Below are positions 19,701 to 22,700 of a stretch of 64,000 nt of DNA, piece after piece; position 1 is the first letter of the stretch; the number at the start of each line of letters is the position of its first letter. A model generated the notes under the pieces. That model worked only from the letters and a program-made list of their open reading frames with translations, ran no database searches and had not been told where the DNA came from. The position numbers and the translations under genes were made by a program. The DNA comes from Macrostomum lignano (taxonomy: Eukaryota): assembly GCA_002269645.1 (NCBI GenBank), contig NIVC01000696.1, positions 310,001-374,000 on the forward strand. Reading direction: 5' to 3'.

Positions 19701-22700
19701 CTATATCACCTTCATAGTTTACTTTATTATTTTAACTTTATATATATATATAGGCCCTCTATATTTCACTTTGGTGATCCACCCAGAACTGTGGCCTGGG
19801 GGCAGTGTCTGCCACTAAGGACTTTAGTGATCCTTAAAGTGACTTTAGTAAACTATAACTACCCGATTGGCTCAAAGCTGGGAAACAGAAGTGGTGTTTG
19901 AATTTTGATTTCGTGTAAACCAACAACAAAGTAGCGACGGCCTGCATGTACGTAGCGAGCTTCAGCAGCAAAGCCCAGCGTAGAAATTACTTTTCAACAA
20001 GTGCAATTTTGTATATTCGTCTGAATCCTAGCTGTAATAATTGTTCACTGTGCCTAAATTGACTCGGGTGCTCCCAACCCGGCAGACAACTCTGTGCACA
20101 GTTGGCTACGGCCACACAGTGCCAGTTTCTTACCTGGGCAAGCTGGCCTGCGCTGCCGCCTGCCTCACCATCATCAGCTTCTTTGCGCTGCCTCCGGTGA
20201 GTTGGAACTGAGGCCACCTGTATCCACCTTCGATCAGGTCGGCTTGGCGACTCTTTATGTAGCAGTCAATAATCGAAAAGTTATCAGTTGCTATTACTGA
20301 ATTCTTTACTTTTTTACAAAACGTTACTGCATTTAAAGCGCTTTGCCTTGGGGAGGAAATTAGTTTGAGAGTCAAAGGTCAATTCAAAGAAGTTCGTAGA
20401 TTTGCCTGTCTGTTGTTGTTTTTTGTAGTGGCGTAGTTCATTAGGAGCTATCGCAGAGGTATTCAGGGTCCGATCTCATGAAGCTACCAGCTACCAGTGA
20501 AGAGCAGTCCTAACTGTACGCTTGTAATCAACATACAGGTAGTTCAGACTCATTTTAAAATTGATTTGAGCAATATTTGGCCCGCGGAGCTAATGTCGGT
20601 AACGTGAACCGGCCTTTACAGACGTGGCCTGATTGGTCGGGAACCCAATTATTAAAGAGCTTCATTAAGTCTTGCAGGAATTTGCAGGAAATTCAAACAA
20701 ATTCTAAACGATATGATGTGCATGCAGAGATTTCCCTGGCCAATATTGTGACTGTGCAATGGAAAAGAGCTCAGAGAATTGGGTTCAGTAAATTAAACAC
20801 GTTTTTAAAAACAAGGTTTCAAACCGTTAAAGTCAGGAGGGCCGATTTTAAGCATCAAACTTATGGTTCTCCTGGTAGCTTGGATTCCTGGCTGGTGGTG
20901 CAGTTGCGTATGTTTAGCCGAAATCTAATTTCATTGATTTAACCGAGACGCAAAGAATGAGATGCCGGCTCATGTTGGGGACAATTTTTTTGTTATAAAT
21001 TAACTTGCAAATTCACATAAAAATTGACTGTTTGATGAAGGCTCCGACAAGCAACCATGCTAACTATTGGTCAATCCAGGTCAGGTGTCCAACAGGTGTC
21101 AACATACTCGGGGGGGGGGGGGTGCTGGGCTGACTGGCTACTGTTCCCTCACGATTTCTTGTGCCCTTGCAGGTCACATTGTGCACAGTTGGCTACGGCG
21201 ATGTCACCCCTAAAACGTGGAGTGGAAAAATTGTTGCATCATTTTGCTCAATTGCTGGCATCTCATTCTTTGCTCTACCGGCAGTAAGTCTCTCGTTGCT
21301 CGCGCGCGCGTGCTTGAGCTGTTTTGATTCTTGTAGTCTGGCACCTGGCACCTTTGCCCTGTCTGCACGGTTGGACACTTATAAGCTGCACTTTACCTTT
21401 CTAGAACTGCATGCTAATTGCTTGGCTTCCTTAATTCTTTCTTGCAAAAACCAAATTCGTTGTCAGCTATTCGGCTTTGCATGATCATTCATGCTAATTT
21501 TTACTTTCTGTCGCGAGTACTTTGTGTTGGAAACTTCACAATGCTTGTTGATTTTTTCTGTTTAACTCCTAAATTAAAAAATCACTCAATGCTTGTATGT
21601 AAAATTAAAATTCCGGTGAACAGAGCACAGAAGCCAAAGAGGAGAACAGAGTTGATTTTTTTGAGTTGTGGTTTAGGATTTCTATACTGGTTGCTATGTG
21701 ACTGTCTGTCTAGTAGACTGCAAAACTACCGCAATATAAGCTGAGGCCCGTCACATTTACAGGGCATCCTGGGCTCCGGATTCGCTCTGAAGGTGCAGCA
21801 ACACCAGCGCCAGAAGCACCTGATCAGGCGCAGAGTGCCGGCAGCCACTCTTATTCAGTCCCTGTGGCGCTGCTACGCGGCCGACCCGTCCAGCACCTCC
21901 ATGGCAACCTGGAAGCCGCACATGCGGCCACTCAGATCGCCCTCCAGGTGAGAGGAAATGCTAAAGAATAACTGGTTTATATACAAGCTGGATGCACATC
22001 AAATTGCACATACAAAGTAGTGCGGGGTGAGTGGTTGGCGGGTTCGTTTCGGCGCATGGTCTGAATAATTTGATCTCCGTGCAGGAAAATCCGTGCGATT
22101 CACGTCAACCAGGGCCAAACCCCAAGGCACAGAGTGCGCAAATGCCTGACTACGAGAAAGAGGGCACTGACAATGAGAAAGTCAGGTCCCCTGTACATCC
22201 TGCGTGAGCATGTGCCTGAGTACGTACCCGTGTGGCTGCTCAGGGATGAGAGGAATTGGCAGAACTGCTTGCCTCCTGTCCTGAGCCAACTTTCGGCAGT
22301 ACTAAGCTAACTAACTAAGAATTATTGCAGTAAGTTCGGCCGCCTGTCCACGATAAAGCGGAACAAGTCGGAGCGGACGCACGCATCCGGCAGCTACACG
22401 CCGATTCGACGCAACGCCATGCCGGACCTGGACCCCGCCAATCCGCAGGCTGCCGCGGAGGTCGCATTCGCTGTTGGGAAGTGAGTGCATACGCTGTCAT
22501 TAATTTGCTGTAGCTCGATTGCACCCTGCAGTGAGCCCAAAGATAAAGCAAGTTCGATTTAGCTAGAATTTTCAATCTGCGTTTTCAACTAACCTGTGCT
22601 TGGCTTCATCTAAATAAGGGCACGATATTGCTGTTCCTGCATGCATTCCGCAGTGACTGCCTGTGAACAAATTCAACTTTGAGAAGGTTGCACAAAAATG

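Follow-up and report, generated by a model that had tools for sequence, protein, structure and literature searches.

Tandem, probably alternative, pore exons in a KCNQ potassium channel gene of the flatworm Macrostomum lignano

A KCNQ gene with two pore exons

The window analysed here is a 64-kb stretch of the Macrostomum lignano genome (64,000 nucleotides (nt); positions 310,001 to 374,000 of contig NIVC01000696.1, assembly GCA_002269645.1; all positions below are those of the window unless another locus is named). Its forward strand carries a KCNQ (Kv7/KQT) potassium channel gene at 10715–25405, in which two tandem exons, here called A and B, each encode the selectivity filter and the S6 segment as far as the P-x-G hinge. 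The original prediction, made from the letters of the window, read it as a KCNQ gene whose pore/S6 region is encoded by two tandem alternative exons, and the comparative evidence supports this reading. Our in-frame model, built from the sequence, has 13 coding exons per isoform and encodes 919 amino acids (aa). Upstream of the pore pair lie the exons at 10715–10848, 11457–11637, 11997–12123, 17394–17569, and 18260–18388 (+); these are followed by either 20086–20196 or 21173–21283 (+), and 3′ of the pair come 21763–21947, 22331–22480, 22684–22926, 23310–23401, 23474–23663, 24033–24129, and 24461–25405 (+). The exon at 22684–22926 has a weak acceptor at 22684, and this is the least certain boundary of the model. 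The frame runs from an ATG at 10715 to a stop at 25405 and is open over 919 aa with either exon A or exon B. It is also kept when both are skipped and when both are included, and in the latter case the protein would have 957 aa, in agreement with the earlier remark that double inclusion preserves the frame.

The product belongs to the KCNQ/Kv7 family by its six-transmembrane Ion_trans core, its K+ selectivity filter, and its KCNQ C-terminal domain. The model contains S1–S6, the filter motif TVGYG, helix A (IQSLWRCY), helix B, and coiled-coil exons. The best protein match of the full-length model is M. lignano BOX15_Mlig000995g2, with the Pfam families Ion_trans, Ion_trans_2, and KCNQ_channel, and near-identical M. 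lignano proteins (P0121 and P0374) carry PF00520, PF07885, and PF03520. For the stretch from S5 to helix A, the closest solved structures are KCNQ1 and KCNQ5 (E = 4e-44). The pore and gate signature of the family (GYGD...) is present with exon B, and with exon A it departs at two places, D to H and A to P. Judged by its sequence, the exon A isoform would thus be an atypical KCNQ member.

The pair is flanked by two constitutive exons. On the 5′ side, the S5/pore-helix exon (18260–18388, +) ends in ...YADALWWGV with a gtgagt donor, and this donor must select the acceptor of either exon A or exon B. On the 3′ side, the GILGSG exon (21763–21947, +) supplies the distal S6 gate and helix A. Exon A (20086–20196, +), the non-canonical pore/S6 module, is 111 nt long, has phase 0/0, follows the 5′ flank ...cccggcag, and ends at a gtgagt donor. 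Exon B (21173–21283, +), the canonical module with the filter GYGD, is likewise 111 nt long with phase 0/0, follows ...cccttgcag, and ends at gtaagt. The two are separated by an intron of 976 nt, and their peptides are 51% identical. The original prediction had described two 111-nt, phase 0/0 exons, 976 nt apart, between the S5 and GILGSG exons, and each of these particulars holds. Direct translation gives GYGH...IISFFALPP for exon A and GYGD...GISFFALPA for exon B, and at the junction to the GILGSG exon ...LPP becomes PPG and ...LPA becomes PAG. The three changes that had been named in exon A (the Asp after GYG to His, the hinge Gly to Ile, and PAG to PPG) are therefore all present.

Residues were placed on human KCNQ1 by the structure-match alignment, in which exon position n corresponds to KCNQ1 residue 307+n, so that exon A covers residues 308–344. 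Position 10 is D317, position 29 is A336 (Gly in KCNQ2–5), and positions 36–37 together with the first residue of the next exon are P343-A344-G345. Mutually exclusive exons are recognised by conservation of exon length, splice sites, and reading frame together with sequence homology (PMC3228551). Exons A and B agree in length and phase and are homologous, and their AG/GT sites were found in all five loci compared.

Maintenance and distribution of exon A

The arrangement recurs within M. lignano, where four loci carry both exons intact. These are the window itself (locus L010, 100% identical over 18200–22000), two near-identical copies (L011, 99.7%, and L001, 97.7% identical to the window), and a diverged paralogue, L002, whose protein P0122 is 77% identical to the window protein in the best local alignment. 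The original prediction had allowed for an assembly artefact. This is excluded because both exons recur in other M. lignano contigs, namely the near-identical copies and the diverged paralogue. A comparison of substitution rates had also been proposed, and it points to purifying selection on exon A. Between the window gene and L002, exon A differs by 19 synonymous and 2 non-synonymous changes, corresponding to a synonymous divergence (dS) of 1.29, a non-synonymous divergence (dN) of 0.025, and a dN/dS of 0.02 (binomial test against neutral proportions, p = 3e-9), with synonymous sites near saturation between the two genes. Exon B shows 19 synonymous changes and 1 non-synonymous change (dN/dS 0.007), and the S5 exon 24 and 0, its protein being 100% identical. 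Exon A of L002 also keeps its acceptor (...ggcag) and its donor (gtgagt).

Related flatworms carry the same pair. The four M. lignano loci, Schistosoma intercalatum, and Paragonimus westermani share the exon order S5–A–B–GILGSG, pore exons of 111 nt, and the splice sites; the A–B intron measures 7.4 kb in the S. intercalatum locus and 14.1 kb in that of P. westermani. Absence or disruption of exon A in related species would have spoken for a dead duplicate; in trematodes it was found intact and with its splice sites. Between Schistosoma and Paragonimus, the proportion of differing synonymous sites (pS) in exon A is 0.83 and that of non-synonymous sites (pN) is 0.084, near the values for exon B. 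Proteins of Echinostoma, Opisthorchis, Trichobilharzia, and Heterobilharzia also contain A-type segments, and the Echinostoma and Opisthorchis models continue from exon A into the intron. These comparisons make exon A almost certainly a maintained coding exon, kept by strong purifying selection in lineages as far apart as Macrostomum and schistosomes.

In a neighbour-joining tree built from 24 pore-exon peptides, the seven A exons (three from Macrostomum and four from trematodes) group together as a single clade in 289 of 300 bootstrap replicates. Six diagnostic columns part every A exon from every other pore exon in the tree. A exons have Ser at column 15, where the others have Thr, and Tyr or Gly at column 16, where the others have Trp. 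At column 17 they share Leu, a residue never found there in the others, which are variable at this position. Column 26 is Cys in A exons and Ser, Ala, or Thr in the others; column 29 is Ile or Val as opposed to Gly (Ala in KCNQ1); and column 37 is Pro as opposed to Ala. A single ancient tandem duplication of the pore exon would be the economical reading of these data, with convergence over 37 residues as a less economical but strictly conceivable alternative.

Outside this clade, the same two neighbouring exons enclose a single pore exon in the annelids Lamellibrachia and Capitella and in a second trematode KCNQ gene (Fasciola). The sole monogenean gene retrieved, from Cichlidogyrus, has a single pore exon that is fused to the next exon, and the only cestode match, Spirometra P0266, has a canonical-type pore. 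Among about 360 other KCNQ pore segments inspected, none had the exon A residue set, and departures at the hinges were confined to the flatworm A exons and one centipede model. In a profile scan of 1.84 billion representative proteins, A-type segments were confined to trematodes. No A-type exon was found beyond Macrostomum and digenean trematodes, in a sampling where cestodes are represented by one match and planarians by none. The word-indexed protein search apparently returned matches of about 0.6 to 1.75 times the query length, and short queries missed full-length KCNQ proteins.

Irregular pore segments were seen in some other animals as well. The centipede protein (Strigamia maritima, P0265) has a divergent first pore copy followed by a canonical copy, which, judging from the protein, may reflect an alternative pore exon that arose independently in a KCNQ1-type gene. 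A protein of the scorpion Centruroides sculpturatus (P0264) contains two identical copies of the pore segment, and in one of the clam Tegillarca granosa (P0002) the end of the S5 exon is repeated.

Exon usage and the choice between A and B

Indirect evidence on usage comes from schistosomatids, in which deposited proteins include both A-only and B-only forms in S. intercalatum, S. bovis (two assemblies), and Trichobilharzia regenti. The members of each such pair are equal in length and differ at 13 positions, all of them within the pore exon; one protein reads ...SFYALPPGILGSG and the other ...SFFALPAGILGSG. Both isoforms are thus already present, unremarked, in deposited schistosome annotations. 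We consider it likely that exon A is a functional alternative coding exon, and the whole is probably a real, ancient pore-exon pair used in a mutually exclusive manner.

Several observations count against this picture. For S. mansoni, UniProt holds a B-only model (1021 aa) and a model with A and B (1058 aa), a difference of 37 residues; models from Paragonimus, T. szidati, and S. curassoni join exon A to exon B; and an S. japonicum "isoform 2" model reads through and ends immediately behind exon A. Exon B is used in all M. lignano gene models derived from RNA sequencing (RNA-seq), and no A-type protein derived from a Macrostomum transcript turned up in word-indexed protein searches or in the profile scan of 1.84 billion representatives. 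With respect to age, the whole-gene tree leaves its deep nodes unresolved (bootstrap 14–38%) and does not settle the orthology of the Macrostomum genes to the trematode gene bearing A and B, and the single origin of exon A rests on an alignment of 37 residues.

Some of these observations have a ready context. The M. lignano models come from RNA-seq assemblies filtered with TACO at --isoform-frac 0.75, which drops minor isoforms (PMC5730564). Because these filtered models all contain exon B, we take B to be the major form in the whole animal and exon A, if used, to be minor or restricted. Logan members of the schistosome clusters span the last exon only. The models joining A to B are in our view prediction errors or splicing noise; from topology reasoning, two filter/S6 units in series would misplace the C-terminus. 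The claim of mutually exclusive use therefore stands in part: the deposited A-only and B-only pairs of some schistosomatids speak for it, and the A+B models of other trematode species speak against it. From the sequences at hand, we regard the two exons as most probably mutually exclusive. What the sequences show is the anatomy of the pair, its conservation, the purifying selection, and the deposited isoforms; we infer that M. lignano splices exon A, that usage is strictly exclusive, and all that is said below about function.

Two other accounts of exon A have to be weighed against a mutually exclusive pair. It could be a duplicated exon that is dead or decaying and is occasionally called by gene predictors, in keeping with the omission of exon A from all transcript-based M. 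lignano models and with its acceptor, whose pyrimidine tract is poorer than the one preceding exon B. However, its frame and both of its splice sites are intact at every locus examined in Macrostomum and trematodes, its dN/dS is 0.02 at saturating dS (p = 3e-9), and six derived residues are common to the A exons of distant flatworms. An unconstrained sequence of 111 nt would not outlast such divergence, and recent independent gene conversions are disfavoured by an A–B dS above 1 within each species. We find a pseudo-exon hardly credible. A somewhat less remote, though still improbable, account is that exon A is a cassette exon used together with B, or the terminal exon of a truncated isoform, as the A+B models of S. 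mansoni, Paragonimus, T. szidati, and S. curassoni and the S. japonicum model that stops after exon A would have it. By the same topology reasoning, a protein with both exons would have two filter/S6 units in series, and the C-terminus that binds calmodulin and PIP2 would end up on the opposite side of the membrane from where it belongs. The equal length and phase of exons A and B are the signature of interchangeable exons, other schistosome annotations contain clean A-only and B-only pairs, and the reading of exon A as a read-through terminal exon is disfavoured by the GT donor conserved immediately behind its last codon.

If the pair is mutually exclusive, the question is how the choice is made. 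Steric hindrance between the splice sites was ruled out, with A–B introns of at least 976 nt (976 nt to 14 kb), as was incompatibility of U2- and U12-type sites (both donors are U2-type, GT[AG]AGT) and frame-dependent nonsense-mediated decay (all exon combinations are in frame). No passive mechanism fits the intron length, the donors, and the frame, and the earlier expectation that exclusion would need an active mechanism is borne out.

RNA structure offers one candidate. An element in the A–B intron (20936–20969, +) can base-pair with the 3′ end of exon B and with the 5′ splice site that follows it, and the partner arm (21254–21290, +) comprises the last 30 nt of exon B and the donor GUAAGUC. 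This is the strongest inverted repeat of the region: 19 Watson–Crick pairs and one G–U pair make up its 20-nt core, and the duplex has an energy of −46.7 kcal/mol. Both the minimum-free-energy and the centroid structures of a 1.27-kb fold contain it, with a pair probability of about 1.0. The element has no other match in the 64-kb window, where 0 are expected by chance. The same intron element also pairs, more weakly (−27.7 kcal/mol), with the 3′ end of exon A (20172–20187). In L002, positions 12049–12080 and 14649–14680 of that locus can form a sharply bounded duplex in which 31 of 32 nt are complementary (−62.5 kcal/mol; 0 expected by chance). Its arms are the last 26 nt of exon A plus GTGAGT and an element 2.6 kb further 3′, within the intron that follows the GILGSG exon.

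These duplexes suggest that exon choice might be set by long-range pairing that hides the 5′ splice site of one alternative exon. Each paralogue has a duplex beyond chance expectation that covers the donor of one exon (B in the window gene, A in L002), and the window element is able to pair with either exon, exon A more weakly. However, the duplexes of the two genes are non-homologous, lying in different places and masking different exons, and no comparable element was found in the Schistosoma locus; two 15-nt matches in Paragonimus sit in a 332-bp dispersed repeat and were dismissed. The energy of the window duplex is no outlier among the donors of the gene, for which GC-rich partners reach −40 to −51 kcal/mol, and the transcript-based models of the window-type gene contain exon B, the very exon that it would mask. 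Small, inert inverted duplications or RNA-editing hairpins are equally possible readings of the duplexes. No conserved intronic elements were found between the M. lignano paralogues beyond the exons, and the near-identical copies (97.7–100%) carry no covariation information for the duplex arms. On this balance we regard duplex-directed choice as possible but doubtful.

In Drosophila Dscam1 and 14-3-3 zeta, among others, docking-site/selector RNA structures enforce mutually exclusive splicing. The likeness to the KCNQ pair lies in long intron–exon complementarity beside alternative exons and in one element that could pair with either of them. The difference is that there is no conserved docking site here: the elements are paralogue-specific in position and target and have no trematode counterpart, and they pair with exon ends and donors rather than with intronic selectors. 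The exon-plus-intron geometry of the L002 duplex resembles the editing-site hairpins of glutamate-receptor and Kv1.1 transcripts. With regard to base composition, the GC content at third codon positions (GC3) of exon B is 0.41, the lowest in the KCNQ gene, where exon A has 0.70 and the other exons 0.57–0.88; in the L002 paralogue the four exons compared range from 0.51 to 0.68. The low GC3 of exon B may reflect a nucleotide-level constraint, for example from the duplex with the intron element.

Possible roles of the exon A module, and neighbouring features

We propose that in an early flatworm the 111-nt exon for the filter, the outer S6, and S6 to the P-x-G hinge would have been duplicated in tandem, and that both copies would then have been kept as alternative exons. 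Splicing of S5–B–GILGSG would give the canonical Kv7 pore (GYGD, Thr-Trp, hinge Gly, PAG), and splicing of S5–A–GILGSG would leave the voltage sensor and the C-terminal regulatory domain as they are and change the pore module between them.

With TVGYG identical in the two exons, what differs consistently is the outer part of S6 and its two flex points. In module A, Thr-Trp is replaced by Ser-Tyr or Ser-Gly, a conserved Leu and a conserved Cys are gained, the upper hinge Gly becomes Ile or Val, and the Ala of PAG becomes Pro (PPG). Compared with canonical KCNQ1–5 (GYGD; A336 or Gly; P343-A344-G345; the GSG constriction), exon B fits throughout. Exon A likewise has TVGYG, ISFF, the hinge Pro, and the same GILGSG exon, but differs by PPG, by an Ile or Val at the upper hinge, by its lack of Thr-Trp, and in Macrostomum by His or Gln in place of the filter Asp.

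PAG has been described as the S6 gating hinge, where S6 bends on opening, and mutations of A336 shift the voltage dependence of activation (PMC7212895; PMC9169635). Because the hallmarks of module A are the change of Ala to Pro at this S6 hinge and of the upper Gly to a beta-branched residue, a change of gating is what we would expect. Module A would most likely alter gating (open probability, voltage dependence, or kinetics) and the pharmacology of the inner cavity, and a new ion selectivity is less likely. Studies of KCNQ1 blockers place the binding of pore blockers in the inner cavity, and by analogy the replacement of PAG by PPG and of the upper hinge residue should alter this cavity too.

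The residue after GYG has a different history. The window gene and its near-identical copies have His here, L002 has Gln, and all seven trematode species in which exon A was seen have Asp. On this sequence evidence, the filter Asp appears to have been lost in the Macrostomum lineage only, and the position seems to have changed again since. In Macrostomum, the loss of Asp to His or Gln may also destabilise or re-tune the filter. D317N, D317G, and D317Y of KCNQ1 are listed long-QT variants (PMC7212895), so the loss of this Asp should matter to a Kv7 filter. In Macrostomum the subunit may conduct poorly or act as a modulator.

The GYGH tetrapeptide of the window gene had been taken to suggest a TASK-like KCNQ subunit that senses extracellular pH. 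In TASK3 the sensor His lies directly after the first-pore GYG. This filter His acts as the proton sensor and gates the filter through a cation–pi contact with the pore-helix Trp (PMC11046659). The likeness extends to the near-identical copies of the window gene, which share GYGH, and to the pore helix, which here also ends in Trp-Trp (ALWWGV). TASK-1 and TASK-3 are, however, two-pore-domain (K2P) channels and thus another channel class, and a conserved His after GYG was not found among the A exons. With Gln in L002 and Asp in trematodes, the His is neither ancestral nor needed for the upkeep of exon A, and if there is pH sensing at all, one paralogue would have acquired it late. A pH effect cannot explain the existence of exon A because the His is not conserved among A exons. 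The pH-sensor reading of GYGH thus comes out weak; we consider exon A as a TASK-like pH-sensing module unlikely, and by analogy a pH effect in the window paralogue is possible.

Taken together, the parts could form one picture: a Kv7 pore module with a rebuilt gate (no hinge Gly, PPG) that is older than the split between Macrostomorpha and Neodermata and gives the channel two gating modes; a loss of the filter Asp in Macrostomum that yields a pH-tuned, filter-gated, or modulatory subunit; and a choice steered by paralogue-specific duplexes that cover one 5′ splice site, or duplexes that are instead RNA-editing hairpins. As a whole this picture is speculative, and we would rate its parts jointly as rather unlikely.

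Alternative pore/S6 exons are a known device in ion-channel genes. Kim et al. 1997 (J Neurosci 17:8213) reportedly described alternative pore-region exons in lobster Shaker. The likeness is that one K+ channel gene with alternative pore exons provides one voltage sensor with different pores; the difference is that the lobster gene is a Kv1/Shaker channel of an arthropod, whereas here a Kv7 unit runs from the filter to the P-x-G hinge and has both S6 hinge motifs changed. Cav1.2 has mutually exclusive exons 8/8a (segment IS6), and BK/Slo1 an alternative exon 9 near S6. Like the KCNQ pair, these are tandem, equal-length, homologous S6-gate exons used in an either/or manner, altering gating or drug sensitivity. 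They differ in not including the selectivity filter and in being vertebrate and experimentally supported, whereas the KCNQ pair is known from sequence. The original prediction knew of no KCNQ channel with alternative pore exons, and this agrees with our literature searches, which found no description of such exons in KCNQ/Kv7 or of the device in flatworm channels, and nothing pertinent on mutually exclusive exons in schistosomes; the KCNQ case is apparently undescribed.

Kv7 channels govern neuron and muscle excitability and are drug targets, and their filter, S6 hinges, and PAG gate are near-invariant across animals. Since module A alters exactly the two S6 flex points, it amounts to a ready-made natural experiment on Kv7 gating. 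A schistosome or liver-fluke KCNQ channel in two pore versions would matter for Kv7 openers and blockers that bind the pore or the S5–S6 pocket. The pore-exon pair also accounts for the contradictory public models of flatworm KCNQ genes (A-only, B-only, A+B, and read-through).

The surroundings of the pair contain some further features. In the intron between the S5 exon and exon A, directly upstream of exon A, lies a spliced antisense gene of 160 aa (18599–19521, −). It is annotated in the identical contig (L010, 16210–17132) and in L011, and its reading frames are without a Pfam match. KCNQ intron 3 holds an array with a tetranucleotide run of about 900 nt, the minus strand of which reads as SIYL repeats. 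Long mini- and microsatellite arrays lie at 222–1468, 3925–5930, 10123–10429, 10949–11364, about 12140–13000, 13707–14240, and 14687–16313, and further arrays at 30967–31283, 31745–32517, and 33342–33869; the lengths of the satellite arrays vary among the near-identical M. lignano copies. Farther downstream, several long open frames at 43371–45844 (+) are hydrophobic and transporter-like, without a Pfam match, and probably belong to a multi-exon membrane-protein gene. At 55580–59720 (+) the window carries a CBP/p300-type histone acetyltransferase gene with TAZ1, KIX, bromodomain, CBP/p300 RING, PHD, HAT_KAT11, ZZ, and TAZ2 domains.

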